A DNA stretch of 63,922 bases, filler included, from Perkinsus chesapeaki ATCC PRA-425 (taxonomy: Eukaryota > Protista > Perkinsozoa), in NCBI GenBank assembly GCA_013115145.1. It is 6 parts of 6 records of this genome, joined end to end, with 100 filler letters (N's around TTAATTAATTAA, not from the genome) between each part and the next. Parts side by side here need not be neighbours in the genome. Positions count along the whole stretch, not along the records: positions 26,374 to 51,814 come from JAAPAO010000525.1; 5 more parts are not named here. One strand, given 5' to 3'. The notes beneath the pieces were generated by a model. It searched no databases, was not told the origin of the DNA, and worked only from the letters and a program-made list of their open reading frames with translations. Positions 3,201 through 51,064 of this stretch are shown here, piece after piece. Both the position numbers and the translations under genes were made by a program. How positions within the stretch are numbered: position 1 is the stretch's first letter; each line of letters starts with the position of its first letter.

Positions 3201-3483
3201 ATCAGCCGGAGGCTCATAATCGGCCTCAGTGGTTTCGTTCTGAAGATCTTCCTTGGCCTGACAGAAGTTAATAAGCGACCTCGAAAGGAATCTTTTTTCT
3301 CACCTTTTCAACGCTTGCTTTAATGCTGGGATAATCTATCCCCTTAAGCTGCTCGATCAAAGCGTTCGCCTCGCTTTCAGTGCATTTGCCAGCGTCGATG
3401 AACTTGAAAACATGTCCTTGGCCCCAGCCATCGAATCGCTCCCTGAGCTCCTTAGGAACCATATCAGCGTTAGAAGCACTCAT
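237..3483 (-). CDS. UAP1: UDP-N-acetylglucosamine pyrophosphorylase, multi-exon
   Basis: ATG at 3483 ([30 protein letters not shown]). Later exons give [11 protein letters not shown]...SKG...[51 protein letters not shown] and a last exon [24 protein letters not shown] ending TGA at 237-239. Exons are separated by GT-AG introns. Confidence 0.92.
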
Positions 3484-3937
3484 TTCGTAGGTGAGAAAAT
3501 ATAACTGTGGAAAGTTCGATCGCGGCCGCGCGCTACTAGCGTCATTTTTAGCGCTAGTAACTAAGGTAAAAATTTTGATTGTCAATCGGAGAGAAGGTTT
3601 GGAGGAGCATTCGCAGATGAAACGGTGATACATTGAATGCTTATAATGTCTGTACGGATCCTAATTGTACGTGAAGACTTACGGTTGCAATGCTGAAGTT
3701 GCAGGCAAAAAATGTCGGAAAAATGCCGCATGCCGGGATCGAGCCTGCGACCTCGTTAAATTGTCAGAGAATATCATTACTACAGTACTTCTATGTAAAA
3801 ACACAAGCTTTTATTACTCCCTTCGAATCCGTTATAGTATAGTTCATGATAATAAGTCTGTGAGCGTGCTTCACAAAAAACTGTTTTCCGAATATCCGTT
3901 TTTGGTGTAATTTAATTCTAGTTGTTTTTGTGTTGTA

Positions 3938-6226
3938 ATGTCAGCGTGGTCCTTCGAGGCTTATATCGGCATCCCTCTAGCAGCGGTGGTGCTATTTCTG
4001 CTGTTGTCAGGTAAGATTCTCCAGAGGTTAACTCGAGAACTTCCAGGACTGCCCGGGTCTCTTTACAAAAATGGATTGTGAATCGCAAACTTAGCTCAAA
4101 AATCCTAGAGTGTATGCAAGCTGATTACTTGTTAGGGGTTATTATTTTAGACCCTTAAGGAAATCCCCAGATGAACGCCTGTATGTCACAATGTATAGAA
4201 AGTATCATCGGACTGAGTTTGAACCGAGTTCCTCGGCCACTAGGCTCGCAGTAGTATTCGCAGCCGTCAGCCCTACGATGGAGAGCATGCTTACCCTCGG
4301 TCGACCAATCGTGGTAACTGAAATGCGAGAATGCTAGCTCGAATCGGCGGGGACTCCCAGTGGACGCTGATCAGTCATAGCATTATTATACTTGCTTATA
4401 TCCAGCGAAGCTTTCTAGAAATTTTCCGATTCTTAAGTCGAAGTTGGTCTTCATTTCAGACGTCCCATTCCTGCAGAGGTTCGCTTGTCGCCTGAGTAAT
4501 GTATCAATAACGATCGGCAACTACGGCATATCATTAAGCTTGGGGATGGTTGTATGGCGGGAACTGAGCGGGAATAATAATGGTTTAGCCTTCAAACGGA
4601 TAGCAATCGTCGAAATATATTATAGAACTTATTTTTAGTAATATTGAAAAATAGTTATCGCACAAGTACATCGGTGCTTGAAGAGTCTTATTTTGTGCCA
4701 GACAAATGCTTCAGTCTCCTAGTTTTTATAACCTTTTTTATCGAGAAATCTGTTAAATATGATTTCGAAAATGCCTTGTTGACTTTCGTGCCGATTAGTA
4801 TTATTGATGCTTCTATGTAACACGTTTCACTAGTATAACACACCTGACCCTGTTTCGGAAGGTCTAAGAGGCCCCTCCTGCTCCGAATATATACCCTTTC
4901 AATGGTTAAAAGGAGGGCACCGCAACGAACAAGAAATACACTTCACTAATACATTTTATTTGCATCGGAAAAGTCGTTATTTGATTCCCATTGGTGAAAC
5001 TCTTTATATGCCTATTGGGTGCGCGACTGCATTTTATATAGATATTGGATGTTAATATGTAATATTTCCTTTTTCCTGTCAGAGCATCGCCTTCGCCTTG
5101 TTTGCTTCCCAATGGATCACATTGCGTGACTTAAACTCAATGAAGGATGCCCAGCTAAGTGATATGACTACAGTTGAACTACAGGACCGGTAAGGGTGGG
5201 AAGAGATGTTTGGGGAAAGACCTTTGTGTGGAACAAATGTGTGCTGCCTATATATCTGAGTTATCTTCAATGCATTTCGATCATTGCATCATAAATGAGG
5301 CGTTTTCGCGAAGATAGAGTAGCAATCATCTGAAAGGTGCTACTAGCACCGTACTGGTTTAACAGTTTGGCGGCGGATCTGATCATTTTCGATCCCTTTT
5401 TATTTGATATTTATTTATATTAGTTATCTTATGAAAGCCTGGAGAGCCGAAAGGAACTGGTGGATATCTCTGTTCTCCCTTACCTTGTGGTTGATGGTTT
5501 GGAGGTCGGCAATGTGGGTTCAAGGTCTGCTGGATGATGAGCAAAAGAAAGATTCGAAGAAGTCACAGAGTAATAGGATTGGATTTATATAATTAGATCA
5601 TGTCGCACGCGTTCATGTATCGATTTTATCACATAGAGATGCTTATTCATCTACTTAATACTACAGTGTGTTCGCGTTTGTTGGGCAAGTTTATTAAAAT
5701 TGAATATTTCGCGTTAGAGTGATGAAAAATGGCTGAAACCTTCAAGGATATAACTATAAGACAAGGGGACATTATTGTACATTATTAACATTAAATTGAC
5801 TTAATTAAATTAGCTTCGCCGTTATTATTATATTTTGCTTATATTGTAATTCTGTACTTGTCGAGTTTGCGCAGAAGAGGGGATTCCGCTCTATGAAGCT
5901 ATTGCTCGTAAATCTGCCATGAGCTTGATAAATACAGTAAAGTGTGAGGTGTAGTGTCCCATATACGAGAAAAGAGTAGTGCTAAATGATAGCATCACCA
6001 TCAGCCCGTAGTAATAATATAAACTCTCCAGCACTCTTCAAGTTCATCACAATAACAACAATCATTTCCGTGTCGTTCAGGTTCCTCCGGTCTTACTGGC
6101 GATCTGAAGGTTGATAAGGATTCCAAATCGTCAGAGAAGCCAGCTACGAGTGATTCCACCAAGGCGTCGGGCAGTAGTAGCTCTAAGAAGGTCTCTGAAG
6201 TTGAAATGACAAGTATGAAAAAGTGA
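3938..6226 (+). CDS. BAP31/BAP29-like ER membrane protein, multi-exon
   Basis: Hydrophobic first exon MSAWSFEAYIGIPLAAVVLFLLLS. Exon near 5430-5567 reads WRAERNWWISLFSLTLWLMVWR, resembling the Bap31 RAQRNxYIxGFSLFL signature. Last exon (6081-6226) is low-complexity and ends in ..MKK-stop. Confidence 0.6.
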
Positions 6227-6899
6227 AAGTACTGAGTTCGTTTCTTGTGGAGAAGGTATTTTGTTTAGTGAGATATACAATCGGTTTTGCTCGCTTACAA
6301 AACCTCTATGTTGAAAAATCTGGGTTAGCGTGTAAAATTGGTAGCGCAGAAATCTGCCGGGCATTGCGGGCTGATGGGCGCATATAAAATGGAGATATAC
6401 GCGTCTTTGGGTCTTTTCAGTTGAAACATATTTTTCATAAGATGCGGAAATCTGCCAGAGTTGTGCGAGGTTTTTTCCCACAAGTACAGAGTCTCGAAAC
6501 TTTAATTTCTCTGTCGTTGTGTGGTGAGTGTAAAGCAGCCTTCAACTTGTAGAGCAATCCGTGATGTATTCCAGCACTCCCTCATCTACCTTGGCCATAT
6601 ATATGTATTCAGTGCATTCAATCATTGCCGCACTATAATGGGTAGCATTGGCAGTTTCGTCTTCGTCAAAAAATGCATATGGGCCAACTTTGTATATGCT
6701 GCTGATGGAAAGCGCCGATTCGCGGGATTAGTCTAAATTGCTTTTAATTGACGTTCTGTCTTCACCGTGAACCTATTGAGTTAATCGACTGGTTAACTTT
6801 GGCGGCTTGAATGAGTTTCAATGCATATCTAGAAAGCAATGATGGGGTTGGTTCGGAAGGGGTTCATTAGAGCTATCATCAGTTTGTTAATTCCGAAAT

Positions 6900-9120
6900 A
6901 TGGGATGCGCTCAATCGACAAGCGGCTCCCAAAGTGGTCCACAAGCCGGCGGTGGGCTGAATGTGGTAATAATGGCGATGAGAGACGGCAGTGGTGTGTT
7001 TCAATAGTAATTTTTACAGACTGGGAGTCGGGCATCACCGACTGGGATTGAATCAAAGATAGTTCTGTTGGGGGACTCAGGCGTTGGTAAGTTGGCTGGG
7101 AAACCGGGTTTTGGGTTTCGGGTTTTGGGTTTTGGGTTTTCTTGTAATAGCCCGCGATATTCTACTCAATCAGGGTCTGACCTGTATACTCTGATTGTAT
7201 TACCTTCTAATAGAAGGCTTCTATTATAGAAGGCTTCTATCAGGTGTATTATGTTCTGCTTTCCGGACACGATATATCAATTGGACCGCGCAGTTGTAAT
7301 TTCAATACTTCTTTCCTTTTAATATCGTAGCTATTGCCACCCTCGAGATAGTGTGAGGAAGAATGTGTTGTTAATTTCAGCTCGTCAACTTGATAGGAGT
7401 TTCAGATTCCTTTGCAGAGAAAAACATCATCATTCTTCAGGAAAATCTTCAATGGCACTGAGGTTCTGTCAAGGCCGATTCCCACCCTTCCATGAAGTTA
7501 CCATCGGCGCTGCATTCCTCCAGCAAATTGTTCGTCTGCCGGGTTCTAATACGCAATTGAAACTGCATATTTGGGATACAGGTCGGAGGGAGGGAGGTTC
7601 CGGGTTCGAACCCGGCATGTTGCATTTTAGGCGGACAGGAGCGATTCAGGGCGATGGCGCCATTGTATTATCGTGATGCTGCTGGTGAGTGATGGGATTG
7701 GTTTTTTGCGGGGGAGCATTGTCTGGTGTGAATAGAAGTAACAGAATGTTCGGCTTTCCGGTGTGTATCCCACCTCGGTGGAGCTAGTCTGAAATCGATC
7801 AGCCGTTTCATAATGCTAAATCAATTAGTAATTGATTTTATACGAAATCGATGAATTTCAAATCTATCAACCGTTTCGTAATTTCAAATCTATCAACCGT
7901 CGTATTTCAAATCGATCAACCGTTTCGTAATTTCAAATCGATCAACCGCTTCGTAATTTCAAATCGATCAACCGTCGTATTTCAAATCGATCAACCGTTT
8001 CGTAATTTCAAATCGATCAACCGTTTCGTAATTTCAAATCGATCAACCGCTTCGTAGCGCTAAACGGATTAGCGTTTACGTCATACCGCATCGATAACCC
8101 AGTTACCCGTAATGTTAATTCAATGAACCGTTTGGTCACAGCTCCTCGAACACACATTAGATTATATTTTTTTATATTTCTATCAGGTGCGGTAGTTGTA
8201 TATGATGTGGGCTCCAAAGAATCTTTTGAATCTGTGAAATTCTGGGTGAGCGAGCTCCGTTCAAAAGGCCCACCGGATGTCCGTATCGCGGTCGCTGGCA
8301 ACAAGGCGGATTTGCCAGAGTCGGAACAGGTGAGCGGCTAACATGTGTTCCGGAGGTTGGGCTCGGGCCGATGGGTCAAGGCGAACGTTCGGTTGCATTC
8401 TCCCCGTCGTGTTTGGATGCCGCGTTGCCAGAACGGTGCTATCGATAGAGATAAATAGTTTCTTACCGAAAGTGGTTCGGAAATATTACTATATTTAATA
8501 TATACAGTGCGTTTGTTTTTGTTGGGCAAGTCGCTGAAATTTGAATATCTCACGTATACATGATCAAACTGAAGTGAGACCTTGAGGACTGTAGCTATTA
8601 AACAAGAGTATAATGTATTATAGTAATAACAATCTAAAATGGATTATTTAGTTTACTAGTTTAATAAGTGATATAACTAAGCATTCATATATATATATAT
8701 TAGTAATGAGATTTTCTCATTCACCACGGCTATGTGTTGGTGGGGTTGCTGAAGTGAGAAAAATTCTTACAAAAAGACACTTACACTTTCCGATGGAGGA
8801 GAATACGGGGATTCACAAAATATATGGCACACCGTTTCAAAGGTTTTTTTTACAAAAAACCTTCGCTCCCGGAATTTTGTGCACTTTTTATAACGTGGTA
8901 TAGATCACAGCGTGCACTTGACAACGTTATGAGGTTGCAGGCTGAGTATGCTAAGGAAAATAGTCGAGCATAAGTGGTCGAGTAACAGGCCTGGAGTTAT
9001 TGAAGCCCGTCTGATAGCTATCGTGTTGTTGTCAGGCTGTAACAGCGCAAGAAGCCGAAGAGTTCTGCCAGGAGAATGGTCTGTTGTGCTTCCGAACTTC
9101 AGCGATGACGGGCGCTAATG
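6900..9120 (+). CDS. RAB5B: Rab5b-type small GTPase with N-terminal MGC motif, multi-exon; C-terminal exon not resolved
   Basis: Spliced reading MGCAQSTSG..., [103 protein letters not shown]. All G-boxes are present. Confidence 0.88.
7107..7140 (+). repeat. Short telomere-like (GGGTTTT/GGGTTTC)n tract in a Rab intron
   Basis: gggttttgggtttcgggttttgggttttgggtttt. Confidence 0.6.
7857..8056. repeat. Intronic minisatellite with 26-bp and 23-bp unit variants
   Basis: About 8 copies of atttcaaatcgatcaaccg(ttt)cgta, long and short units interspersed. Confidence 0.9.
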
Positions 9121-10877
9121 TGAGACCTGTGGGGAAACGCTTTATATAATTTTATCGATTATAATTTCACACCGAATGTTACTCTGGAGGGGACGAGCTT
9201 TCATCAGACGCGTTCAGCGGGAATGCGCTTTGGCACTCCTGCTTTCACCGAGTTTTTAATCTAATCTCGAAACGTAGAGCACTTGAGCCTTCAAGGAATA
9301 TGTTCCCGCACGACTGGACAAAGCAACTTGGCATTCACGAACGAAGAAAACTCTCTGGTGGACCATGCTGAGATCCTTACGGACTGCACTTCGCCGACGA
9401 ATTACTAGTAGAGATTGGCCTTTTGCTGTGAGGCTTTTTACTTGTCATTTTGGGGCAAATTATGTCAAATGTTGACAACTCTATAAGTTGGGGAATTCAG
9501 CTTACGTTCTCATCTTTTTCCGCTTCGGCTTGAAAAGGAACATTCTGTTGCTATGATGTTGGGAATATAGGCTAAAAGGTGATTCCTCTTGTATCATCAC
9601 ATTCGGAAGTCGGAGGTGGAAGAGTTTTTTCATAGTTGCTGCTGAGACTATGTTAAGACTATTTGAGATTTTTTGTTAAGACTCTAAGACTTCCCCTGAA
9701 TTTTCCCTGAGGAAAAATTCAACGCAGCATTTGGGAAATGCCCTACCTGAATTATCGAGAGAACGAAAAACGAAAAGACTCGTATGTCGAGATGAACGTT
9801 TTAGTGAGCTCACTATGCGAATCGAAAAATGACCGGCAGAATTGATTACCGGGATTTTGTGAGATTGGTCATTGTCGTTCAGATTGGCAAGTTGTTCGAG
9901 TCACTCGCAGAAGAAGTATATAATGTGATAAAGAGCAAGCAGCGGTCACCAAGCGCCGCTGCAACTGGAGGCCAATAAATGTAGACTTGTTATTCATTAA
10001 TATTGCATTAAAAGTAACAGTATTGTGTTGAAGAGTTATTATTGGGGGAGTAAAGGCAAAAGACTAAGCGAGGTTAAGCGGGCAGACTAGTTGTGATTGT
10101 GCAAGTACACAATTCGAGTGTCCCCTAGCGCTAGTACTCACTGATGTGTATATGTTGATAGTTAGGGTTCCATGAATCCACCAGTGTTGAGTTCTGGTGA
10201 TTACGCTGGTGGCTTCGCAATATTGAACCACGGCGGTGGACCAGGAGCCATAAAGAGACGGTAAACGGCTCCAGAAAGAACATTTGATTATGAAATCAAA
10301 CTTCAATGTTTGTTCTGGAAACGCTTGGTCTGAACAAGTTGATCATACAGCAATCATTATTTAGGAGCTTCCTATTAGTAACGCTTTTTAACCTCGAGAA
10401 TAGCGACATTTCAGCGATGGTAGGAGTATCGTGATGAAGTCGTGAATGGCTCGTATTAATTGAGCGGTGCTATCGAAAAGACGTGCACTAGACGTGTAAG
10501 TGAAACACGATAGAGGAAAGAGTGGTGAAGGTCGAATGAATGGTATTCACTGGATGCCATTTCAAGAGTTGTAGAAACGTCGTCTTTTGACCCGAACCGC
10601 GGGCGACCAGAGAAAACATCATTCACTATAATAACGCGACTTGCAGATGTTTATAGATAAGACCTTGGAAAATGTCCTTTCCTTTGCTTAGGCTCCTAAA
10701 TAACACTGCTGATGAACCGCCAATCTGAGTATCTGCGCGCATTGACAATTGAACGGGCAGATGCACAGTCGGAATTGCAGATAGTTATCAACCAGGCACG
10801 CAGGCCAAATAAACCGAATAGCAAGACGGAAGTGAAATAGTTTAACCCGGCTAGTGTAGACAACCAGGGCTCGGAAT

Positions 10878-26373: not shown

Positions 26374-26520
26374 GTCATACCGCTCCCTTCTATTATTAAA
26401 GTATCTTATATGGTCATACCGCTCCCTTCTATTATTAAAGTATCTTATATGGTCATACCGCTCCCTTCTATTATTAAAGTATCTTTTATGGTCATACCGC
26501 TCCCTTATCAAAGTATCTTG
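26374..26520. repeat. 39-bp tandem repeat at contig edge (3 full copies plus a partial)
   Basis: gtcataccgctcccttctattattaaagtatcttatatg starting at 26374, 26413, 26452 and 26491. Confidence 0.92.
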
Positions 26521-34184: not shown

Positions 34185-34359
34185 GACTATGACTCACACA
34201 GCTTACGGCGGGGTTCTACGCAGCACATCCGGGAGGACGAGTTCCTTGAGTCCAGTCAAAGACCCAGAAGGTCTACCATAAGACCTGCGTCAGAGTAGCA
34301 CCTCCATCGGCGGTGATGTCTTGCGTAGAAACCCGTCGTAAGCTGTGTGAGGCATAGTC
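34185..34359. repeat. 175-bp fold-back element with about 45-bp imperfect inverted repeats
   Basis: gactatg.ctcacacagcttacg.cggg.ttctacgca..acatc at 34185-34229 is inverted at 34315-34359. Confidence 0.8.
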
Positions 34360-35820: not shown

Positions 35821-36257
35821 GATAGTTTGACATCCAACAAGATGTGCAGTATGAGACATAGTCTTGCCATGCCTGCCGAGGAAGCTCAGGTTGAGGATTT
35901 GATCATTATTAGGTGGCTTGCCAACTACGCATGATTTATCTTGTTTGAAGAACATGATCAGTCGTAGCCTCGAGTAGCCGCGTAGCCAAGAGTAGCCAAG
36001 TCAGTAGCCCCTACTCGAAACATGATACATGATTGTAATGCGACATACACGCTTGTAGCTTGACGTAAACGAAAGGCAATGTTGGAAGAACGGATAATAA
36101 AGTTCGTTGAGTAGACTGAATGCCGACCGGCTGATGAGCGAACGTAAAGAGTGCTCAAACGTAGATGACTATCAAATGAATCATACAATCGCCAAATTGA
36201 GCACTTTCGATGACTAAAGAGTCGTTACTAACCGTGCCATTCGTCTCACCGAAAGAT

Positions 36258-36680
36258 CTACTGACAAGAACCGGAAGCTAAGTCTTCGTACAGCTCTGGA
36301 CCAAATTGTGTACGCACAATATTACTTTGAGAAAAGTATTCATAGTCCCTCAGATCTCCTGGGTCAACCCTTATAATCCCCAAACAAACGCAATTCTCGA
36401 TAAAGCCGACAAAGTCGACATAAGTTGGATACGATGCTGTGGTGATTTCGTAGTGCGTAGGAGAGCTCTTCTTAATAGTCAAGGTAATATTATCCTTATC
36501 TTGCCCACAAATTACGAGTATATTCAGCGGTTGCGCTGCATTAGCTGCTCTATTGAGCCAGTCTACTTGCACGCAGACATTACCACCGATATGCTTGAAG
36601 TATTTACTGACAGGGCCAGTACTTGCTTGTAATTCCATAAAGGATAGTGAGATGGTTAGTAGCAACCAGACGAGGGCCAT
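36258..36680 (-). CDS. Secreted 4-Cys protein family F2, copy 1 (140 aa)
   Basis: Signal peptide MALVWLLLTISLSFMELQA; CVQVDW..ICG..VCL..GSCQ. Confidence 0.78.
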   Translation of the reverse strand: MALVWLLLTISLSFMELQASTGPVSKYFKHIGGNVCVQVDWLNRAANAAQPLNILVICGQDKDNITLTIKKSSPTHYEITTASYPTYVDFVGFIENCVCLGIIRVDPGDLRDYEYFSQSNIVRTQFGPELYEDLASGSCQ

Positions 36681-38526
36681 TTTTGGGTAACTATAACTAA
36701 CTCATGAGCGACCATGGTTTCTTAACCGGTGATCAAGAAGACAAAATCCCAAAGGCGTTGAAGCCATTAGGGCGTTCGTTTACTTGTATACAACCCAGGT
36801 ATTCCCAAATTATGGCCGACTTTAGCTCGAGGGATCTCACCACCAAATCACATCGGCAAGACTCACGCTCGTTGATGGATGATTTACACGCAACAGCTTT
36901 GCCTGGTGGAGCGGCTCCACGATGGAGCCTCCATCGTAGCCACGAGGGTAACTCGTAGTTTGCAAATTAACGGCCCAAGAATTCAGGATTTGAACTTTGG
37001 GGACACTCCCAATATGCATCGCCCAACATGTTTAATACACCACATTTTACACTGTTAGCCTTGTGGGCGGAGTCATGACCGATGCGTCCATTGATAGTAA
37101 CGGTACTACAGACAGTGCCAATTGACATATCGATCATCGCATACTGCACGATGGTCTTCTATTAAGGGTTCATACGAAATACTGCTTACTGGGCAGGCAG
37201 AACAGATACGCACAATAGCTGTAGACCTTGAATCAATGAAGCTAGCTGATCTCAGCATGATCCCAGCGTGTCTGTTCCTATGACTAATTCGCTGTGCACG
37301 TGGCACGTGTGCGCTGCGCACTAATCCGCTGAAGAAGCGCCACGCCCATGGCCCATGGCCGACGTCAGCGGAATTTAGTGTGTAAAAAATGGTTGATTGA
37401 ATCGATTCCAGTTTCGAGAGTGAAAAATCCCAGATAAGTAATTCGGGATTTAAATTCCTTTATCAATGAGATATTCTCATTGAGAATAATATAACCTCTA
37501 ATACGACAGCATATATCAAAAGCAAAAAGAGTAGTATCACTCATAACAGTCTGTTCCCCTCTCAACCAAACTCGATAAGATATGAGTGGGAGATACTTCG
37601 AATATAGTGGGCATGTGAGCCGCGTACCGATTAAGACTTACTCTGGAACTCTGATTTCTTAAGAGCTCAATAAGTATTATACTATTACGGACCAGTCGCA
37701 CAATAATTTTCAATTCTATAGTGATACCATTTATATAGTCCGAGTTGAAACGTAATTCACGAGTGCACTTGATGTAAAAAAGAAGGTCATGTGTTGCGCG
37801 CTTAATACAGTTTACTGAGCTCAAGGGTATGTCTTTATTGTGATTGCCATGAAGTGGAGCGGCCGATATTGAAATCGGCTCGCTGAGTTCAGGTTGGGTT
37901 CGGTGAGCGATTACCCAGGTCGGAGCGAGCTGCACGCAAGCTGCAGTCACGTACTGCGTCATGCTTGAAATTGCAAGTGGTTCTTGACTTGACAATGTTA
38001 AGCTTGGATTAGACGCGGCACGCCGTCGTTTTCCATTAACAGTTTAACGCAATATTACAACCTTGGTTGGAGTAGAGCTGAGTAGACGAGAGAGGGTCTA
38101 TCCGGGTTACTAAACCGGCTGGTAATAGGCGAATAGTCGACTGTAGCTTACCATATAACACGCATGAACAAAAGGCGTGTGAGCGGAAGTGTATATAAAC
38201 CTGCTTCAGTGGGCAAGGACTAGCCACTGGACAAACGAACTGTTATGACCATTATGGTCAGCTATGGCAGTACCGTACTGTCAGCATGTAGTACGCGGCG
38301 CTTCATGTGCGCGGTGATAACTGTGGAAAGATACCAACCTTACCACTCGATAAAACTAGCGAAGTATCAGCCTCCGCAAATAAATGACCATCACCAGATT
38401 CAGCCTCTCATCATCGAGAAGCAGTAGTACTACTATTGAGATGAAAATACGGTACAGAAAGGAGAGGCTGACCTTCACAGTTTACCATAAACAAACTCCA
38501 GCTAGGCTAGCTGAGCTAGCAACCTT

Positions 38527-38931
38527 CTACTGACAGGTGCCTCGCTCCAGTTCAATGAGACTGCCCTGAAAAAGTGTGGACACAGAGCCTGAGCCTTCGT
38601 TGTAGAAGAAGAGCTTCATGTCAGGTTCCTCCGGAGAGGTCTTGAGTTCGCATTGCTTGTGTGACTTATCAATGAAGTCGTTGTACTCACCTACACTGCT
38701 TGCAGCTATAGTGTATGTTAGGTTATTAGTCTTATCGACAGCCAGATGTGCCGAGTATCTTTCATTATAGCAATAGATGATATCGTCAACGAAGGTTTGT
38801 TCTCCACGGCTTGTCCAGATAGTCTCAATACACACATCTTCGTCGATCTTCTGGCTAAAATTGCCGTGAAGAGCAACCTTTGAGCACCGAATGCACAAGA
38901 GTAGACTGGACAGCAGGCGAATGTCTACCAT
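38527..38931 (-). CDS. Secreted 4-Cys protein family F3, copy 1 (134 aa)
   Basis: Signal-like MVDIRLLSSLLLCIRCSKVA; CIETIW..YCY..QCEL..GTCQ. Confidence 0.75.
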   Translation of the reverse strand: MVDIRLLSSLLLCIRCSKVALHGNFSQKIDEDVCIETIWTSRGEQTFVDDIIYCYNERYSAHLAVDKTNNLTYTIAASSVGEYNDFIDKSHKQCELKTSPEEPDMKLFFYNEGSGSVSTLFQGSLIELERGTCQ

Positions 38932-40573: not shown

Positions 40574-40709
40574 GATACTATGCCAATAGAAGGGTCGATT
40601 TCAGTTTCGGGAGTAGAGAATCTCAGATAATTAACTCGGAATTCAAAGTACTCTATCACTGAAAATAATATAGCCTTCAGTACGACAGCGTATATTGGGA
40701 GCAGAGAGA

Positions 40710-41877
40710 GTAGTATCACGGCGTGATAATCACGCATAACAGTCTGTTTCCCTCTGAGCCAAACTCGGTAAGATATAAATGGGAGATACTCCGAATATAT
40801 TGGGCCTGTGGGCCGCTTACTGGGTAAGACTTACTCTCGAGCTCTCAACTATTAAAAGCGATATTTTACTATAACGGGCTAGTCGAGGATTTTCACACGA
40901 GAATTCTCAATTCTGTATTGATACCATTAAAATAGTGCGAGTTGCAACATAAGTTACGAGTACACTTGATGTAAAAAAGAAGGTCATGTGTTGCGCGCTT
41001 AATACAGTGTACTAAGCCCAAGGGTATCTCTTTGTTGTGGGTGCCATGACGGTGGAGCGGCTGATATTGGAATCAGCTCGCTGAGTTCTCAGGTTGGCTT
41101 CAGTGAGCGAGTACTCCAGTCGGAGCGAGCCGCACGCCAGCTGCAGGCACGTCGTTCCCCGTTAATAGTTTAACGCAATATTACAACCTTGGTTGGAGTA
41201 GAGTAGACGTCTATCCGGGTTACTAAACCGGCTGATAATAGGCGAATAGTCGACTGTAGCTTACCATATAAATGAACAAAAGGCGTGCGAGCGGAAGTGT
41301 ATATAAACCAGCTTCAGTGGGCAAGGACTAGCCACTGGTCACCATAGCCATAGGTCACCACTAGCCACTGGATAAACGAACTGTTATCACCATTATGGTG
41401 CAATATGGCAGTACCCTTCTGTCAGCATGTAGTACGCCGCGCTTTATGTGCGCGGGGATAACTGTGGAAAGATACCAACCTAACTACTCGATAAAACTAG
41501 CGAAATCTCAACCTCCGCAAATAAATGACCATCACCAGATTCAGCCTCTCATCATCGAGAGGCATTAGTAGTACTATTGATATGAAAATACGGTACAGCA
41601 AGGTGGGGCTGACCTTCACAGTTTATCATCAACAAACTCTAGCTAGGCTCGCTGTCAGTGAGTCTAGCTCAGTGAGCTAGCAACCTTCTACTGACAGGTG
41701 CCTCGCCTCAGCTGAATGGTACTGCCTTGAAAAGCTGTGAACACAGAGTGTAGAGCTTCGCCGCAAGTAAAAAACGTTATTTCAGGTTTACTCCTAAAGG
41801 TCTTTAGTTCGCATTGCTTGTGTGACTTATCAATGAAGTGTCGTTGTACTCACCTAAACTGCTTGCAGCTATAGTGA
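40710..41877. repeat. Partial, diverged third copy of the duplication unit
   Basis: Aligns to about 37525-38710 with indels. Confidence 0.85.
41688..41877 (-). pseudogene. F3 3' fragment (5' end missing)
   Basis: gacttatcaatgaagt..ttcgcattgcttgtgtgac..cacctgtcagtag matches the F3 C-terminus (..QLRRGTCQ-stop); homology ends at about 41877. Confidence 0.8.
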
Positions 41878-42955
41878 CAGTGCGACACGCTTGGAGAGTC
41901 ATCGTCCTTTCGCGTACGAAGCTTTGAACGGATGAGCTGCAACTTGCTACCTGAAGAATCCTACGTTGCTACTCTCGATTCGGGAGTCCCGAACCAGACT
42001 CTTCCGGAATATTATTCCGGGAATACAGCGTCCAGATACGGACAATTTTTCCGGGAGAAGGATTCCATGGACTGGCACTTGCAAGAAGAGCTAGCTTGAG
42101 CGGATAAGTTACAATTGTGAGATTCCTCTCACGCCGAGTCGACGTCGTTGTCGACCTTTTCATGTCGTGTATATCAATAGGAGAGGCCGGGCCTCAGAAG
42201 CCCTATTAATGCTATGAGACACGAAGCTCCTAGCAGCGGGAGACGCTAGCACAAGCCATCCAAGAACCACTGCTCAATTCATTGATCAGTTTAAGCCGAC
42301 GATCATCTTAGCGTGTACAGGATCTAGCTTAATTGCGCTGCATAACTTGTTCAACGCAATAAGAGGCCATTTGGAAAGAAGTACTGAACTGACGCGAGTG
42401 ATGAATGGCTACATGACCCCTTATCATGTAACGTGCACGAAGAACCTTTCTTCGGAAAGGGCACGTGTAAATGACTCTGGCCTCCTACCTGTAGAGTAAC
42501 AGATTGGGCTCTCTAGCTAAGTCATTCGGAATGATGATAGATGACGCCGCCATCATGACAGCGTTCGTAAGAAGCGAAGCTTGGGAGTTGGTATACTAGC
42601 TGCAGAAGAACATTGCAATCACCTGGGAGTATAGCCCTTACTGCGGATGATGTAACCCCTCCACAACGATTCCGATGGAGGAGATTGAGTAACAATGGGA
42701 CCCGTTCATTCAGCCAGTTCCCGACGATTCCCCTTTGACTAACGCTACTCGGCGGTGTCATCTGGACTGTGATGGAGACTAGTTAATAGCTACTATTGAT
42801 GATAAAGTCTGATGATCTCTCATATAAACTTAACCCTCATCCATATAGCTCAAAGCGTCGTGAAACCGCACCACCGGTTCACAGGATAACGAGATCGATA
42901 TGATGGGCATAAACAGACACGCGGTAGCGCTAATGTGCAGCAAAAGAGAGCCTCT

Positions 42956-43456
42956 CTACACTGTGGACTTTGGTATGCCGTGATCCACCACTTTCAGAGT
43001 CTCACCAGCCTCGATTAAAGTAAGCTCAACTTTGTAAAGTCCGCTGAAGCCCAGCGTGAGAGATAAAGAGTCTGGATCATCCGCGGCGACCCAGAATATA
43101 TAGTGCAAATACTCCAAACCTATATGAGCGAGCAGACCTGGAATACATCCGTCATGCTCGGGAGGATAAGATTGCATGGTTTTCTCGTAACGGAAGTGGC
43201 TTCTACAGGTATAAGGCCCAGCGTCGGTTGTGAAATTGAGAGTCGCGGAGAATGTGCGTTTCGACGCTGCATATACATAGGCCTCATAACGAACCTTATT
43301 GCGCATACCCCCATACTTCCCAATATCAACGGAGTACTTTGGATCACCGCAGCTCTTCAATCCAGTCATCATGGCATAAGGAATAATAAGCAATACACAT
43401 CTCAACCAAACGGAGTATGGCTTATCGGCGGGTTTAGCCGTACGACGGCAAGTCAT
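42956..43456 (-). CDS. Putative secreted/surface protein, unrelated to F1-F3
   Basis: 166-codon ORF with hydrophobic segment VWLRCVLLIIPYAMM, then GKYGG and a C..C pair (YTCR, DGCIP); true start uncertain. Confidence 0.55.
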   Translation of the reverse strand: MTCRRTAKPADKPYSVWLRCVLLIIPYAMMTGLKSCGDPKYSVDIGKYGGMRNKVRYEAYVYAASKRTFSATLNFTTDAGPYTCRSHFRYEKTMQSYPPEHDGCIPGLLAHIGLEYLHYIFWVAADDPDSLSLTLGFSGLYKVELTLIEAGETLKVVDHGIPKSTV

Positions 43457-43933
43457 ATCTTCGTACTATAAAGTTTAGGAGAACAAAGGTGCTGTGGAGA
43501 ACCTCAATGGCCAATATTGTTGATCCGACAGGGCCTAACTCGGGGGATTGCGTTCTGCTTGCACGCGACTCGCGTGACGCGAGAATAACCGATGTAAATT
43601 ATCAGGCTTGTTGATGTGCGGTAGGATATTCGCAGCCAAAAGCATCATAAGAGGCGATATTACGAAAGCTCTCCTCCTGTGAATGTGAAGCACGACGAAG
43701 CTTGTGCTATCATACGCTCTGATGGGAAAGAGGGGCCCGTCGAGCGCGTGCGTCAATCTCATGTCACGGTGTACATGCGTACGATAATCGGGGGGGGGGG
43801 AGCTGCTGAAGGCGGTTGAGACTTTTACTGGAGGTCTAAGAGTTTCAGGTTCGTTACTGCAGAGAGTCTGAGGGTCTCATTGATTCGCCCTCGCCCGGGA
43901 TTTCTGTTCTTCTATAGTATCACTACTATTTGC

Positions 43934-44250
43934 CCAGCCATATGCTATGGCCGACTCTCAGCCTGTGAGATTCGGGGCGACCTTCTCCCCCCTACAGATA
44001 GGGCTCACGCCTTAGATTACTCGGCCATATGCTTTGGCCAACTCTCAGCCTGAGAGATTCGGGGCGACTTTCTCCCCCTTTACACATAAGGCTCACGCCT
44101 TAGATTACCCAGCCATATGCTATGGCCAACTCTCAGCCTGAGAGATTCGGGGTGACTTTCTCCCCCTTTACATATAAGGCTCACGCCTTAGATTACCCAG
44201 CCATATGCTATGGCCAACTCTCAGCCTGAGAGGCTCGGGGCGACCTTCCC
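43934..44250. repeat. 87-88-bp tandem array (about 3.5 copies) inside the YR element
   Basis: gccatatgctatggccaactctcagcctgagagattcgggg.. starts at 43937, 44024, 44112 and 44200; no unique spacers. Confidence 0.92.
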
Positions 44251-44499
44251 CCTTTCGCTGCCGGGACCAGTGATCTTAGCTCAGTCTCATGCGACAAAGC
44301 CTATGGTGCTAGTTCATCTTCCCAGCTTGCAGATAGGGCTCGCGCCTCCTCTTACAGAGAATACTACGCAAGGGCGTTTATCATTGACCATCATACTAAC
44401 CTTCATTTAGTTCTTCTCCCAGGGGGACATTGTTGGATCATCCAACTTGGATGTACTTCAATCGGATTCTGTCATCACTGTTCTGGACCTCTGCTCATG

Positions 44500-45417
44500 T
44501 TCACCACAAAGTCTCTCATGCTCACCAAAAATACGTTGGCATATACTCTGGAGTCGCAAGTTAGGACTCACCCCGACTTCAAAGCAGCTTAAACTGCTGA
44601 AGATTTGTGTCTCCTGCAGCTCGGAAGTCCTACAGATCAGCACTCACATGCTTCCTCCTTTGGCATTGTACACACCTTCCGAGAGCCTCGATATTCTCCT
44701 GTGTCGTCAATATGATTCAATCGCTCATTATTGCTAATCGGGCGCATGCTCGCTACGTTACAGACTGTATGAATTTTGCTCATCACTGTAACTTACAGTG
44801 ATGAGCAAAATTCATGCTACATTATCCCTCCCTATCAACTTCGATGATTCCTTAACGTATCTCATGGTTAGAGGTGCATTAAAGGTGATTCATCAGCGTC
44901 GTACGCGAAGGACCTTCGTCGAAGCCTTCGACTTGAAGGTCTCTTTGGTGCTTTCTGTGTTCTTTGTTACAGGCTGTAACTTACAGCTTTGGCCTTCGAA
45001 TACCATCCGAGCTTTGGATCCCGGGACATTGTTTTCTCCGGATCCTCTATTTACTTGACACTACATTACCGGAGGAATGATTCACCTCCTAGTCAATCAC
45101 ATAGGTCGAGTACATGCTCCTTAACGGGGAGTAAACTATGTCCCGTTGAGCCTGGAAAGATTGCAGTGGCACCTCGACCCGAGTCCTTTTCGCAGTCCAC
45201 CTTCAATCGGTTACTTAATAACTGCACCAAATTTCTACCTGACATCTCACACGGTGCAAGCTCTCATGCTTTCCGGCGAGGTTTCACAACCGAGCTGGTC
45301 CTAGCTGATGGTCCAGGTTCTACCATTGCCAAACTAGGCGTTCGAAAGTGTCCTGCAACTATGCTGCACTATCTAACTCGTCGTGCCCGTAGATGCTTAC
45401 AGCATAAACGACGTTAG
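44500..45417 (+). pseudogene. Tyrosine recombinase (phage integrase fold), frameshifted
   Basis: Core-binding remnant RKSYRSALTCFLLWH; catalytic-domain remnants RDIVFS..IYLTLHYRRND, KLCPV, SSHAFRRG (HxxR), LG...PATMLHY (catalytic Tyr). Confidence 0.85.
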
Positions 45418-48400
45418 TTGATGCTATAGCGGCGATAGTATTGCCTACTAATATAGACTAGCTTTTGCTCATTCTCTACCTCACCTCTTCTCGTCATTGG
45501 GAAAGTTCGGTTCGGTGCCGAGAAAGTATCACGAATTGCCAACTATGGGTGAGGCTCACTCAGTAAGCACATTGGAGGCTTGCTCCTATCTAATGGGGAG
45601 AGGACTAGCGGCCAGCCATCTTGACAAAGAGTGTCTTACAATGGGGACTCACTCTGTCAAGATGGTTGTCGCTCGTCTCCGTTGCTCACCGCCCAACGTA
45701 GTTTGAGACGGACATGGGCTGAACTATCGAGGAGTGTATGTGAAGCACGACGAAGCTTGTGCTATCATACACTCTGATGGGAAAGAGGCGCCCGTCGAGC
45801 GCATGCGTCAATCTTATGTCACGGTGTACATGCGTACTATAATCGGGGGAGCTGCTGAAGGCGGTTGACACTTTCACTGGAGGTCTAAGAGTTTCCGGCT
45901 CGTTACTGCAGAGAGTCTGAGTGTCTCATTGATTTCGTCCCGCCCTTCACTCACTCACAATTGTTTGAAAGAGAGTTCACTATGGTTGTCGCTCGTCTCC
46001 GTTGGGACTCACTCTGTCAAGATGGTTGTCGCTCGTCTCCGTTTCTCACCGCCCAACGTAGTTTGAGACGGACATGGACCGAACCATCAAGGAGTGAATG
46101 TGCTGCATATTTGAAACTCGGTTTCCAATCCTCTCGAGTCCGAAATTCATCCTCCACCACCGTATCCAGCCTACCGAAGCTAAACCGTAGTACGGTTACC
46201 GTACGGGTTTTGCATAACCTACTGTACTAGGTTAAACCTAGTCTCGCCCAAAAAGGCTCCCCAGTTTTTTTACTAGTACTAAATAAAGAGGATGCTTGGC
46301 GGACGAGTGTGTGGGGAGTGAGTTACTTCAAGTAACACTCCTGCCGGAGTCTCCCGGGGTACGCCAATTCATCGCCAATGGAAACTTTCCACAACGTGCG
46401 CGTTCAGCTCACATCTGTGCCGTGTTTACGTTTCTTTCATACATAACCCATCGAATGAGATATAAGGATATAAGGATGGGACCCATCCTTATCCTCTATC
46501 CTCCCCTTATAATAGTCTAGTGCATTAAGTTGTATCTGTTCTATTACTGATAAAACAGATACAACTATACTTGGGTTATCCAAGCTTCCTGGCGCGGCAA
46601 CGAGTCACACCCAGGATGGCGATGCCAATTCCAGCGGGTACTTCGTAAGTTTAGTAGCGAGAGTAGCTCGCTTGTAGTGAAAACTACAGCATGTACTACT
46701 CTAGGAAGAACTCAAAAGTCTAACTTAAATCTCTTTTCTTTTGATTCGACCCCATTTAGGCAGGTACAATGCTATAGGGTGCTGGCAGCACTCTATAGCG
46801 AGTTCCAAATCCGATAGCACATTTCCGTATGTAGACATTCTTTCGTTTGTTCATTGCTCAAAGCACAGTAGGAATATCGGGTTGACTCGCACGGCACTGG
46901 AAAGACCTGGTGAGAGATTTCGAATGGTAACCGTGCTAACAACAAGTTCGCACGCGTTATGAAATCCCGAAGGGTGGGTCTTTTTGCAGCACCCTGTATA
47001 TGCTTCGGTGTGTTATGACGTCGGGATTCCCGACTCGGGAACTTCCCGACGGGAAGGCACTATTGACTAGCCTAGGATGGTATATGGTGAATATACTACA
47101 GCCCACCACAATGAAATATAATATTTCGTTTCTTAACGATTTCTCGTCCGCTATTGAGCGTACGACCCAGAAATTTTGTAGCATAGTACTAGAAAACACA
47201 GCAAGGAAGAATATGTGAATCGGTCAACCGTTTCATGCCTTGGTGCAAAGATAACGGCGCGCGAAATTTTCCGCGCGCGCAGAACTGCCCAAGTGAAATA
47301 GAATACTTTTTCCTGGTGGTACCAGAATCTAGTAACTATGGATAGTGGATAGTACCTGAGATGGCAAAACAATATCACGACCAGTGAAATAGCGAGTCTG
47401 ATGCTAGGCTAGTGATTTACTAGTGTAAATCACAACTCGAGCAACTTCAGCACGGGACTTGCTCAACTTGAGCAGCTCAATGGTATCTCTAGTTGCCTAT
47501 ACGGTCTAAGAGCCCCTCCTAAGAGTCTCATAAGGAGCGCTTTGTCAATTCTCTTCCCGAGGCTAATATAAACGCGCCTGGTTTCTCTGACGAAGCTCTC
47601 GACATCTCCGAAAATACTGTTAAGAAGCGACCTCGCTCTGGATGGCGCATTGTGACGCAACCTAATCGGTAAAATACTGAACTGAAGTCAGAACTTACTG
47701 CTACTCAAGCGGGAGGAAAAGATTTCTAATTATGCCCATGATGGAAATTCCATCTCAAAGCCACAACACTCAGGGAAATACCAAGCGTGATTGGAGGAGC
47801 TACACTTGCAGGAATTACCACAATTTGGCCCAGAATAAATGGCATAGTATTCTCTGCTCTATTGTGAGTGCCGCTGAAGCTGCAGCCTTCTTCTTCTTGC
47901 CTTTACCGGACTTCTTCCCTTTCATACGCAAATGAAAACCTGCTACCTCAGCATTTTCCTTAGACAACTCACCCCTCTAGCAAACGAAAAAATATGCTTG
48001 ACCAAAAATGCCGCTCTTCAACCAAGTTTTCCTATTGTCGCTTTTTTCATTATGTGAGCAAGTGAACGGTCGACGAACGAATCGACCAATCCAGCAACAG
48101 TGAAGACACCGCCCACGATAGCACAGACTTGCACGATGAAATGTGCGAACGATTTCCGCATTTCGACGAATTCAACACTCACTGTAGAAATATCGTAGCG
48201 AATGAGCGGTATGAGGTATGATGTGCGGCATGAGACATACTCTTGCCGTGCCTGCTGAGGAAACTCACGTTGGGGGGACCATAACGAAACGCAATGTTAA
48301 CGTAAACGAAAGGCGAAACGAAAGGCAATGTTGGAAGGACGGATAATTGAGTTCGTTGAGTGGGCTGAATACTGACCGGCTGATGAGCGAACATGAAGAG

Positions 48401-48513
48401 TGTTCAAACGTAGGTGACTATTAAGTGAATCATACAATCACCAAATTGAGCACTTTGGATGAACCATGATTGACGAGTCGTTACTAACCGTGCCATTCGT
48501 CTCACCGAAAGAT

Positions 48514-48936
48514 CTACTGACAAGAACCGGAAGCTAAGTCTTCGTACAGCTCTGGACCAAATTGTGTACGCACAATATTACTTTGAGAAAAGTATTCATA
48601 GTCCCTCAGATCTCCTGGGTCAACCTTTATAATCCCCAAACAAACGTAATTCTCGATAAAGCCGACAAAGTCGACGTAAGTTGGATACGATGCTGTGGTG
48701 ATTTCGTAGTGCGTAGGAGAGCTCTTCTTGATAGTCAAGGTAATATTATCCTTGTGTTGCCCACAAATTACGAGTATATTTAGCGGTTGCGCTGCATTAG
48801 CTGCTCTATTGAGCCAGTCTACTTGCACACAGACATTACCACCGATATGCTTGAAGTATTTACCGACAGGGCCAGTACTTGCTTGTAATTCCATAAAGGA
48901 TAGTGATATGGTTAGTAGCAACCAGACGAGGGCCAT
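48514..48936 (-). CDS. Secreted 4-Cys protein family F2, copy 2 (140 aa)
   Basis: Differs from copy 1 at four residues that I can see (S/G, D/H, C/Y, R/K). Confidence 0.78.
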   Translation of the reverse strand: MALVWLLLTISLSFMELQASTGPVGKYFKHIGGNVCVQVDWLNRAANAAQPLNILVICGQHKDNITLTIKKSSPTHYEITTASYPTYVDFVGFIENYVCLGIIKVDPGDLRDYEYFSQSNIVRTQFGPELYEDLASGSCQ

Positions 48937-50659
48937 TTTTGGGTAATTATAACTAACTCGTGAGCAACCATGGTTTCTTAACCGGTGATCAAGAAGACAA
49001 AATCCCAAAGGCGTTGAAGCCATTAGGGCGTTCGTTTACTTGTATACAACCCAGGTATTCCCAAATTATGGCCGACTTTAGCTCGAGGGATGTCACCACC
49101 AAATCACATCGGCAAGACTCACGCTCATTGATGGATGATTTACACGCAACAGCTTTGCCTGGTGGAGCGGCTCCACGATGGAGCCTCCATCGTAGCCACG
49201 AGGGTAACTCGTAGTTTGCAAATTAACGGCCCAAGAATTCAGGATTTGAACTTTGGGGACACTCCCAATATGCATCGCCCAACATGTTTAATACACCACA
49301 TTTTACACTGTTAGCCTTGTGGGCGGAGTCATGACCGATGCGTCCATTGATAGTAACGGTACTACAGACAGTGCCAATTGACATATCGATCATCGCATAC
49401 TGCACGATGGTCTTCTATCAAGGGTTCATACGAAATACTGCTTACTGGGCAGGCAGAACAGATACGCACAATAGCTGTAGACCTTGAATCAATGAAGCTA
49501 GCTGATCTCAGCATGATCCCAGCGTGTCTGTTCCTATGACTAATTCGCTGTGCACGTGGCACGTGTGCGCTGCGCACTAATCCGCTGAAGAAGCGCCACG
49601 CCCATGGCCCATGGCCGACGTCAGCGGAATTTAGTGTGTAAAAAATGGTTGATTGAATCGATTCCAGTTTCGAGATTGAAAAATCCCAGATAAGTAATTC
49701 GGGATTTAAATTCCTTTATCAATGAGATATTCTCATTGAGAATAATATAACCTCTAATACGACAGCATATATCAAAAGCAAAAAGAGTAGTATCACTCAT
49801 AACAGTCTGTTCCCCTCTCAACCAAACTCGATAAGATATGAGTGGGAGATACTTCGAATATAGTGGGCATGTGAGCCGCGTACCGATTAAGACTTACTCT
49901 GGAACTCTGATTTCTTAAGAGCTCAATAAGTATTATACTATTACGGACCAGTCGCACAATAATTTTCAATTCTATAGTGATACCATTTATATAGTCCGAG
50001 TTGAAACGTAACTTACGAGTGCACTTGATGTAAAAAAGAAGGTCATGTGTTGCGCGCTTAATACAGTTTACTGAGCTCAAGGGTATGTCTTTATTGTGAA
50101 CGCCATTAAGTGGAGCGGCCGATATTGGAATCGGCTCGCTGAGTTTAAGTTGGGTTCGGTGAGCGATTACCCAGGTCGGAGCGAGCTGCACGCAAGCTGC
50201 AGTCACGTACTGCGTCATGCTTGAAAGTGCAAGTGGTTCTTGACTTGAGAATGTTAGCTTGGATTAGACGTGACACGCCGTCGTTTTCCGTTAATAGTTT
50301 AACGCAATATTACAACCTTGGTTGGAGTATATGAGAGAGGGTCTATCCGGGTTACTAAACCGGCTGATAATAGGCGAATAGTCGACTGTAGCTTACCATA
50401 TAACACGCATGAACAAAAGGCGTGTGAGCGGAAGTGTATATAAACCTGCTTCAATGGGCAAGGACTAGCCACTGGACAAACGAACTGTTATGACCATTAT
50501 GGTCATCTATGGCAGTACCGTACTGTCAGCATGTAGTACGCTGCGCTTTATGTGCGCGAGTATCACTATTGAGATGAAAATACGGTACAGCAAGGAGAGG
50601 CTGACCTTCACAGTTTACCATAAACGAACTCCAGCTAGGCTCGCTGAGCTAGCAACCTT

Positions 50660-51064
50660 CTACTGACAGGTGCCTCACCTCAGGTTAATGATACTGCCCT
50701 GAAAACGTGTGAGCACAGAGCGTGAGCCTCCGCTGTAAGTGAAAAAGCTCATGTCAGGTTCCCCCGGAAAGGTCTTGAGTTCGCATTGCTTGTGTGACTT
50801 ATCAATGGAGTCGTTGTACCCACCTAAACTGCTTGCAGCTAAAGTGTGTGATAGGGTACCAGGCTGATCGACAGCCAGATGTGCCGAGTATCTTGCATTA
50901 TACCAATAGATGATATCATCAATGAACATTTGTTCACCGTGGCTTGCCCAGGTAGTCTGAATACACACGTTATTGTTGATCTTCTTGCTATAATCGCCAA
51001 AAGGAGCAGCCCCTGCGCTCCAAATCCACAAGAGTAGACCGGGCAGCAGGCGAATGGTTACCAT
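50660..51064 (-). pseudogene. F3 copy 2 with premature TGA four codons before the ancestral stop
   Basis: agg TGA ggc acc tgt cag TAG, versus gag CGA ggc acc tgt cag TAG in copy 1; Cys2 is also replaced by Trp (IIYWYN). Confidence 0.7.

Follow-up and report, generated by a model that had tools for sequence, protein, structure and literature searches.

A probable internally deleted, inactive copy of a Ngaro-like YR retrotransposon in Perkinsus chesapeaki

Contig JAAPAO010000525.1 (25.4 kb; assembly GCA_013115145.1) of Perkinsus chesapeaki, a parasite of clams, carries a 2.4-kb element bounded by split direct repeats. The element was analysed within a window of 63,922 nucleotides, the whole stretch of DNA to which the coordinates below refer. 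A first-pass annotation had proposed the order A1, 88-bp array, YR, B1, A2, partial B and B2, and repeat alignments together with TRF bear this out, giving the following features.

43679..43896, + strand: A1 repeat, 218 bp, opening with the left core copy, GTGAATGTG (43679-43687; 9 nt)
43933..44252, + strand: 88-bp tandem array (TRF, 3.7 copies, 91% matches)
extending to about 44347, + strand: degenerate partial unit of the 88-bp array
44447..45417, + strand: pseudogene remnant of the pol 3' end (RH-YR linker and YR domain), matching P0001 residues 753-1082 in three frames
44590..44592, + strand: in-frame TAA stop within a conserved THPDFKAA-L-AEDL stretch
44764..44798, + strand: 35-nt frameshifting insertion, a direct-inverted-direct duplication anchored on GTTACAG; L001 is uninterrupted there
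44973..44986, + strand: 14-nt frameshifting insertion of the direct-inverted-direct type at a second GTTACAG; L001 has no break there
45418..45643, + strand: 3' untranslated region, from the pol stop to B1; 45475-45516 is 87% identical to L001 8212-8255
45613-45635 and 45646-45668: inverted repeat across the start of B1
45644..45742, + strand: B1 repeat, 99 bp; the final 9 nt, GTGTATGTG (45734-45742), are shared with the beginning of A2 and make up the core of the internal B/A junction
45734..45945, + strand: A2 repeat
45977..46004, + strand: partial B, 28 nt, reiterating the 5' part of B (93%), as in L001 8789-8884
46004..46102, + strand: B2 repeat, closing with the right core copy, GTGAATGTG (46094-46102; 9 nt)

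The two A repeats are 91% identical over 219 columns, including a 6-nt indel in a run of G, and the two B repeats are 94% identical over 99 nt. The 9-mers lie at both ends and at the internal junction, where the first-pass annotation had placed them; the pattern GTGWATGTG occurs at exactly these three sites in the whole window, with 0.38 expected by chance and a count of three reached in none of 100 shuffles. No second copy of the 2.4-kb element is present elsewhere in the 25.4-kb contig, and a search of the same contig for a paralogous empty site found no second copy of the 1-kb flanks. The contig is rich in segmental duplications, among them one of 12.25 kb and one of 3.1 kb.

The region between the array and B1 had been annotated as YR; the YR-derived sequence is indeed there, and the open gene is not, since what is left is a broken remnant across three frames. 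Frameshift-aware alignment matches this remnant to P0001, a P. chesapeaki polyprotein of 1,082 aa, at residues 753-1082 only (189 identical codons among 322 aligned). The open part is limited to the final 142 codons (44989-45417), and the protein closest to it is again P0001 (residues 950-1081; 67% identity, E 2.7e-45). The frame is shifted at least four times, near 44600, 44760, 44957 and 45015, and the 35-nt insertion yields a perfect 47-bp palindrome (44769-44815; 23-nt arms, 100% complementary) together with stop codons. Two GTAACTTACAG stretches, considered as 11-nt introns whose removal restores the frame, are ruled out as such; alignment with the full-length relative L001 shows them to be parts of the 35-nt and 14-nt inverted-duplication insertions. 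Of the YR signature (R, K, HxxR, H/W, Y), the C-terminal HxxR and Y motifs are recognisable, and the conserved catalytic Lys and Trp are both replaced by Arg. Homology to the recombinase begins mid-polyprotein, in the linker some 40 residues before the YR domain, with no start codon of its own. Pfam assigned no family to the six longest ORFs of the element, and a PDB sequence search returned weak integrase matches alone (E 0.4-0.85). The YR leftover is a pseudogene.

The absence of gag, RT and RNase H noted at first pass holds: tblastn with ORF1 and the polyprotein of L001 was significant within the element only at polyprotein residues 753-1080, and tblastn queries with gag, RT and RH from the relatives gave only noise (E > 0.08). 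About 3.9 kb, comprising ORF1, RT and RH, is missing and is replaced by ∼550 bp made up of the 88-bp array and other sequence; the array plus 44253-44446 occupy the position of gag-RT-RH. The array itself has no similarity to the relatives L001 through L005 and matches no tRNA and no Rfam family.

The same genome holds an RT-bearing relative, L001, a 5,971-bp element on contig 708 that shares homologous A and B repeats with the window copy. It has the layout A1...B1A2(b)B2 (A1 3009-3184; ORF1 3488-4513; pol 4710-8066; B1 8474-8568; A2 8563-8738; partial Bs; B2 8885-8979) and encodes a 341-aa ORF1 and the RT-RNase H-YR polyprotein P0001. The window copy is collinear with L001 from about pol residue 753 to B2, and the A and B repeats of the two are 79-87% identical: the first ∼105 nt of the window A1 match the L001 A repeats at 79-80%, and B1 matches the L001 B repeats at 83-86%. 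YR identity to this closest full-length relative is only ∼59-67%, and the window copy thus belongs to a sister lineage rather than descending directly from L001.

The domain assignments in P0001 come from several comparisons. The RT carries a YMDD motif, and P0001 matches a homologue bearing RVT_1 at E 1.8e-20; RVT_1 is detected in two family members (best E 4.7e-12). A PDB search for RT returned nothing with P0001 alone or with a two-sequence profile, and a profile of seven family sequences matches the Ty3 RT structure 4OL8 (E 2e-7). The RNase H residues D571, E608, D633 and D683 are invariant, and residues 930-1070 match Phage_integrase (PF00589; E 1.4e-6); Pfam reported no further domain in P0001 beyond those named. 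The RH extends to about residue 690 and homology to YR is picked up from about 790, with only ∼110 residues between RH and YR. A second relative, L002 from P. olseni, shares the layout of L001 with separate gag, RT and YR genes. A metagenome scan with a YR alignment found no relatives. Both L001 and L002 have the domain order gag, RT/RH, YR with no methyltransferase domain, and the split direct repeats A1...B1A2B2 are found in all three elements. The alignments show intact Perkinsus relatives organised as A1, gag-like ORF1, RT/RNase H/YR and B1A2(b)B2, with A and B repeats homologous to those in the window.

These relatives bear on other readings of the repeats and the recombinase. In a contig where segmental duplications abound, A and B might have arisen by ordinary local tandem duplication unrelated to transposition, as the first-pass annotation allowed; the chance of this is vanishingly small, because homologous A/B repeats in the order A1...B1A2(b)B2, with a conserved junction, recur around full-length elements elsewhere, both on other contigs and in a second species, namely L001 and L002. 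A Crypton-like circle dimerised in tandem, the second unit then being deleted, was also considered, and is ruled out by the same layout around RT-bearing relatives. The first-pass annotation had further proposed a minimal element that kept only YR, or a type intermediate between Ngaro and Crypton. A true YR-only element, whether a DNA transposon akin to Cryptons that bears split direct repeats or a step in evolution between the two groups, could account for 2.4 kb devoid of gag, RT and RH in which HxxR and Y are still recognisable. As a functional element it does not survive the missing start codon, the four or more frameshifts, the stop and the loss of catalytic Lys and Trp, and as an intermediate it is at odds with a homology that starts at residue 753 of an RT-RH-YR protein, in the linker, and with A and B repeats shared with an RT-bearing element of the same genome. 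A search for YR-only relatives of 180-580 aa gave only a 352-aa protein, located downstream of an end-cut 336-aa gene, and one partial fragment. We regard the YR-only reading as very improbable.

The core at the ends and at the junction recurs in the relatives, with a length of 9 bp in the window element, 6 bp (AGTGTA) in L001 and 8 bp (TTGTATCA) in L002, and the junction GTGTATGTG is also present in the P. olseni fragment L003. L002 is inserted in phase within a 43-bp satellite, 33 units of which display the uninterrupted, empty site; its integration took place at a short sequence common to the B/A junction and the target, with no target-site duplication. The proposal that a circle integrates at the core shared by both ends and the B/A junction fits these observations. 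Following the established DIRS/Ngaro model, which the relatives support, a double-stranded circular cDNA would be formed in which the B2/A1 joint copies the B1/A2 junction, and the element's YR would integrate this circle. Conservative recombination between the short core at the joint (GTGTATG-like) and a similar target sequence would leave the core at both ends without a true target-site duplication. In the window element the ends read GTGAATGTG, whereas the internal junction reads GTGTATGTG; a simple crossover to one side of the differing base would leave T at one end, so heteroduplex resolution or later mutation is needed to explain the mismatch.

The 2.4-kb element is very probably an old copy of a Ngaro-like (DIRS-order) YR retrotransposon of P. 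chesapeaki that has suffered an internal deletion and been inactivated by mutation; its placement draws on architecture rather than on a tree. The alignments show that it retains the repeats at either end together with the final ∼330 pol codons. Because RT and RNase H, present in the full-length L001, are missing, we class the window copy as a deletion derivative and not as an autonomous member; with gag lost as well and only a broken recombinase tail left, it appears to be a commonplace transposon remnant rather than an element of a new kind. Another part of the interpretation in the first-pass annotation that stands is the Ngaro/PAT-type arrangement A1...B1A2B2 in a derivative lacking gag, RT and RNase H. 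No enzyme can come from this copy, which at most could have been moved in trans in the past.

The K2P distances between A1 and A2 and between B1 and B2 are 0.078 and 0.058 in the window element, 0.006 and 0 in L001, and 0.028 and 0 in L002. The contig is short (25.4 kb), the assembly is a draft, and homopolymer and palindromic insertions can arise in sequencing; some of the single-base frameshifts and the 11-G run of A1 could be assembly errors. That the internal deletion, the frame breaks or both are artefacts in a full-length element is nonetheless highly unlikely, as repeat divergence of 6-8%, catalytic amino-acid replacements and a substitution-type stop are untypical of assembly errors.

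The deletion may instead have preceded insertion, with the 2.4-kb form belonging to a non-autonomous family that was transcribed, reverse-transcribed and integrated by the proteins of autonomous Ngaro-like elements. Complete repeat ends, a complete B1/A2 junction and a core at both ends agree with this, as do autonomous-looking relatives in the same genome and the published precedent of SIRE and VIPER (PMC6681497). Against it, the 25.4-kb contig shows no further copy that has this deletion junction, the protein collections hold no closer protein fragments, and decay in place gives an identical picture. We consider such a trans-mobilised family unlikely. A broader version is equally tentative: a SIRE-like family of the 2.4-kb form might be moved in trans by Perkinsus Ngaro-like elements that share a conserved, clade-wide junction core of the GTGTATG type and select targets identical to it over 6-9 bp, one lineage homing into the 43-bp satellite. 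If this SIRE-like family and core-matched targeting were real, they would provide natural empty and filled sites for the study of YR retrotransposon integration.

The dead 2.4-kb copy itself is of very little importance, truncated and remnant YR retrotransposons being common (PMC3783388, PMC6681497). Its context has modest value, as it points to apparently undescribed Ngaro-like families in P. chesapeaki and P. olseni, which include young copies with repeats 99-100% identical and ORFs open. Clean sequence evidence for conservative integration guided by core homology also comes from the cores of 6-9 bp and from an insertion for which the flanking satellite offers 33 repeats of the empty site. 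In the DIRS order, such integration has so far been mostly inferred.

Among known systems, DIRS1-like and PAT-like elements are YR retrotransposons for which integration by way of a circle is assumed, and PAT also has split direct repeats. Unlike DIRS1, the window element has neither inverted terminal repeats nor an internal complementary region; among the inverted pairs in 42500-47500, none is terminal. The Perkinsus polyprotein differs from both groups in lacking a methyltransferase domain, an absence that separates Ngaro from VIPER, DIRS1 and PAT. Cryptons have a YR gene that is intact and stands alone, lack long split direct repeats, and owe their short terminal direct repeat to recombination between a circle and a target with a few bases in common (PMC3212892). 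The window element resembles them in having YR-related sequence without RT and a short direct repeat at both ends, but its YR is the truncated, inactive 3' end of an RT-RH-YR polyprotein gene; in place of an intact YR gene as sole transposition enzyme it has a broken frame with no initiator codon, starting at residue 753, and in place of 4-6-bp direct repeats alone it has split repeats of 218 bp (A) and 99 bp (B). SIRE of Trypanosoma cruzi, a truncated, non-autonomous, high-copy derivative of VIPER of ∼0.4 kb, corresponds to A2 and B2 (PMC6681497). It is likewise a deletion derivative of a YR retrotransposon with split direct repeats, with repeat ends kept and no working enzymes, whereas the Perkinsus form is known from a single 2.4-kb copy that retains A1, the pol tail and B1A2B2.

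Ngaro retrotransposons of the DIRS order (Goodwin and Poulter 2004) are also known from Cafeteria (PMC8547959). Compared with Ngaro, the window copy is without ORF1, RT and RH, and of its YR only a broken tail is left; in L001 a single gene model of 1,082 aa spans RT, RH and YR; and Pfam RVT_1 falls below significance on the Perkinsus RT itself. What the window element and its relatives have in common with them is the arrangement of split direct repeats, A1-[ORFs]-B1A2B2; in full-length Perkinsus members, a gag-like ORF1 followed by RT/RNase H and then by a YR that has the HxxR and Tyr motifs; too little space for a methyltransferase domain; and no target-site duplication beyond the short common core.

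The 2.4-kb element at 43679-46102, which carries a tyrosine recombinase (YR)-like sequence, is a decayed, internally deleted copy from a Perkinsus Ngaro-like family; it is a known kind of element. Its split direct repeats align with 91% identity for A1 and A2 (219 alignment columns) and 94% for B1 and B2 (99 nt), in the following layout:

43679-43896, A1 repeat
43933-44252, 88-bp tandem array, 3.7 copies (TRF)
45644-45742, B1 repeat
45734-45945, A2 repeat
45977-46004, partial B, 28 nt
46004-46102, B2 repeat

The first bases of A1 and the last bases of B2 are GTGAATGTG, and the B1/A2 overlap is GTGTATGTG. GTGWATGTG occurs at only these three sites (A1 start, B2 end, B1/A2 overlap) in the whole window, against 0.38 expected by chance, and a count of three was reached in 0 of 100 shuffles. 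Alignments, array, and GTGWATGTG sites agree with the repeat order and core positions of the first-pass annotation, which were accurate. An imperfect inverted repeat spans the start of B1 (45613-45668) and recurs in L001 (8443-8499), a P. chesapeaki locus with a full-length relative; both elements also have reiterations of the 5′ part of B in the interval separating A2 from B2. These features may represent a conserved cis element of the family.

Pfam gave no matches for the element's ORFs, and the longest of these (44989-45417, 142 aa) has weak PDB integrase matches. An exhaustive phmmer search matched it to residues 950-1081 of P0001, the L001 polyprotein (E 2.7e-45, 67% identity); with tblastn and frameshift-aware alignment the match extends over P0001 residues 753-1082 (window 44447-45417) but not beyond them, spread over three reading frames. 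The lesions are as follows:

44590-44592, TAA stop
near 44600, 44957, and 45015, frameshifts
~44764-44798, 35-nt insertion, which makes a perfect 47-bp palindrome
44973-44986, 14-nt insertion

The L001 DNA is uninterrupted at the sites of both insertions. Even in the open last 142 codons, Arg stands at two conserved positions, the catalytic Lys of the RKN motif and the Trp of the GGW motif. Taken together, the stop, frameshifts, insertions, and Lys and Trp replacements mark the recombinase of the window copy as a pseudogene fragment rather than a retained gene. Both insertions (44757-44815, 44966-44992) are direct-inverted-direct micro-triplications anchored on the heptamer GTTACAG; possible origins are fold-back (template-switch) errors in replication, footprints of hairpin-type excision, and sequencing artefacts. 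A reading as 11-nt introns was rejected, as the stretches belong to the inverted-duplication insertions.

In P. chesapeaki, P0001 carries the annotation of a hypothetical protein, and its gene lies on JAAPAO010000708 (L001). An exact-sequence look-up with an ORF of the window assigned the 25,441-bp piece that holds the element to JAAPAO010000525, from that same assembly; PMC11513098 also supports the species link. P0001 has a YMDD motif, matches an RVT_1-bearing (Pfam) homologue (E 1.8e-20), has Atlas neighbours with RVT_1 and RT_RNaseH, and shows a Phage_integrase match at residues 930-1070. A seven-sequence family profile matches the Ty3 reverse transcriptase (RT) structure 4OL8 (E 2e-7), Pfam RVT_1 is found in two family members (best E 4.7e-12), and the RNase H (RH) acidic residues are invariant. 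P0001 is thus an RT-RH-YR polyprotein. The L001 element is 5,971 bp long:

3009-3184, A1
3488-4513, ORF1, 341 aa
4710-8066, pol
8474-8568, B1
8563-8738, A2
8789-8884, reiterated partial Bs
8885-8979, B2

Identity is 99% between its A copies and 100% between its B copies; with an open ORF1 and a 1,082-aa RT-RH-YR gene model, L001:3009-8979 is apparently young and a candidate active element. Window and L001 repeats share 79-87% identity, with collinearity from pol residue ~753 through B2. With homologous A/B repeats and P0001, L001 represents the RT-bearing parent kind. The P. olseni element L002, a more distant relative, shares its layout, but there gag-like, RT/RH, and YR are separate genes. 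Ordinary tandem duplication as the source of A/B was rejected, given that further loci, including some in a second species, show the identical layout. An intermediate or YR-only (Crypton-like) type, as earlier proposed, was likewise abandoned: the YR piece is broken and its homology begins only partway through the polyprotein, and RT-bearing elements have homologous repeats. The proposed derivative status holds insofar as this is a deletion derivative of a Ngaro-like YR retrotransposon, but no functional YR was kept.

Some 3.9 kb (ORF1, RT, RH) is absent from the window copy and replaced by ~550 bp (43897-44446) comprising the 88-bp array and sequence unmatched in relatives. K2P between its repeats is 0.078 (A) and 0.058 (B), compared with 0.006 and 0 in L001 and 0.028 and 0 in L002; this divergence and the YR decay indicate that the copy is old and dead. 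Assembly error could account for some single-base frameshifts, not for repeat divergence or catalytic substitutions. The deletion may predate insertion, the window form being trans-mobilised in the manner of SIRE-like elements (PMC6681497), or may have arisen in place afterwards; no fragments closer to the window element were found in the protein collections searched.

The contig also contains segmental duplications (36067-38725, 40656-41839, 48316-50858; 12.25-kb and ~3.1-3.2-kb spacing) encoding orphan small proteins of 134-169 aa with a hydrophobic N terminus and C-terminal G-x-C-Q; two share 26% identity (E 7e-9), and the family has no Pfam matches. A 39-bp tandem repeat (26374-26506; 3.4 copies, 98% matches) occupies the extreme contig start, and a 45-nt inverted repeat (34185-34359; 89% complementary, 85-nt spacer) could be a hairpin or MITE-like structure.

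The shared-core idea was retained. L001 has a 6-bp core (AGTGTA) and L002 an 8-bp core (TTGTATCA), each at the A1 start, B2 end, and B1/A2 overlap. The L002 element (4023-9581 of P. olseni JABANP010000948) lies exactly in phase within a 43-bp satellite (2400-4022 and 9582-10702), each unit of which contains TTGTATCA; 33 units at the locus have the uninterrupted site (left flank, one TTGTATCA, right flank). These units are a natural empty site and show that insertion duplicated nothing apart from the core that is part of the element. L002 may reflect satellite-targeted integration. No paralogue of the window copy's flanks was found within its contig. The B/A junction of L003, a P. olseni fragment, is identical to that of the window element (GTGTATGTG), and that of L001 is GTGTATGCG; the junction core is therefore conserved across lineages whose YRs are only 30-45% identical. 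These data fit the established DIRS/Ngaro model, in which the circle's B/A joint recombines conservatively with a target that has a few bases in common with it. Position 4 of the window core is A at both ends versus T in the conserved junction; this difference requires either later mutation or a heteroduplex in the overlap that was resolved in favour of the target allele at each end. As by-products, the intact relatives and the insertion within the satellite are of more use than the window copy, itself of low interest.

The Perkinsus relatives resemble Ngaro elements as described (PMC8547959, PMC13465315) in their split direct repeats and gag-RT/RH-YR order. Only ~110 residues separate RH and YR in the polyprotein, too short for a methyltransferase, and none is present. 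The family thus has the Ngaro architecture and is a putative member of that clade, an assignment made from this layout rather than phylogeny.
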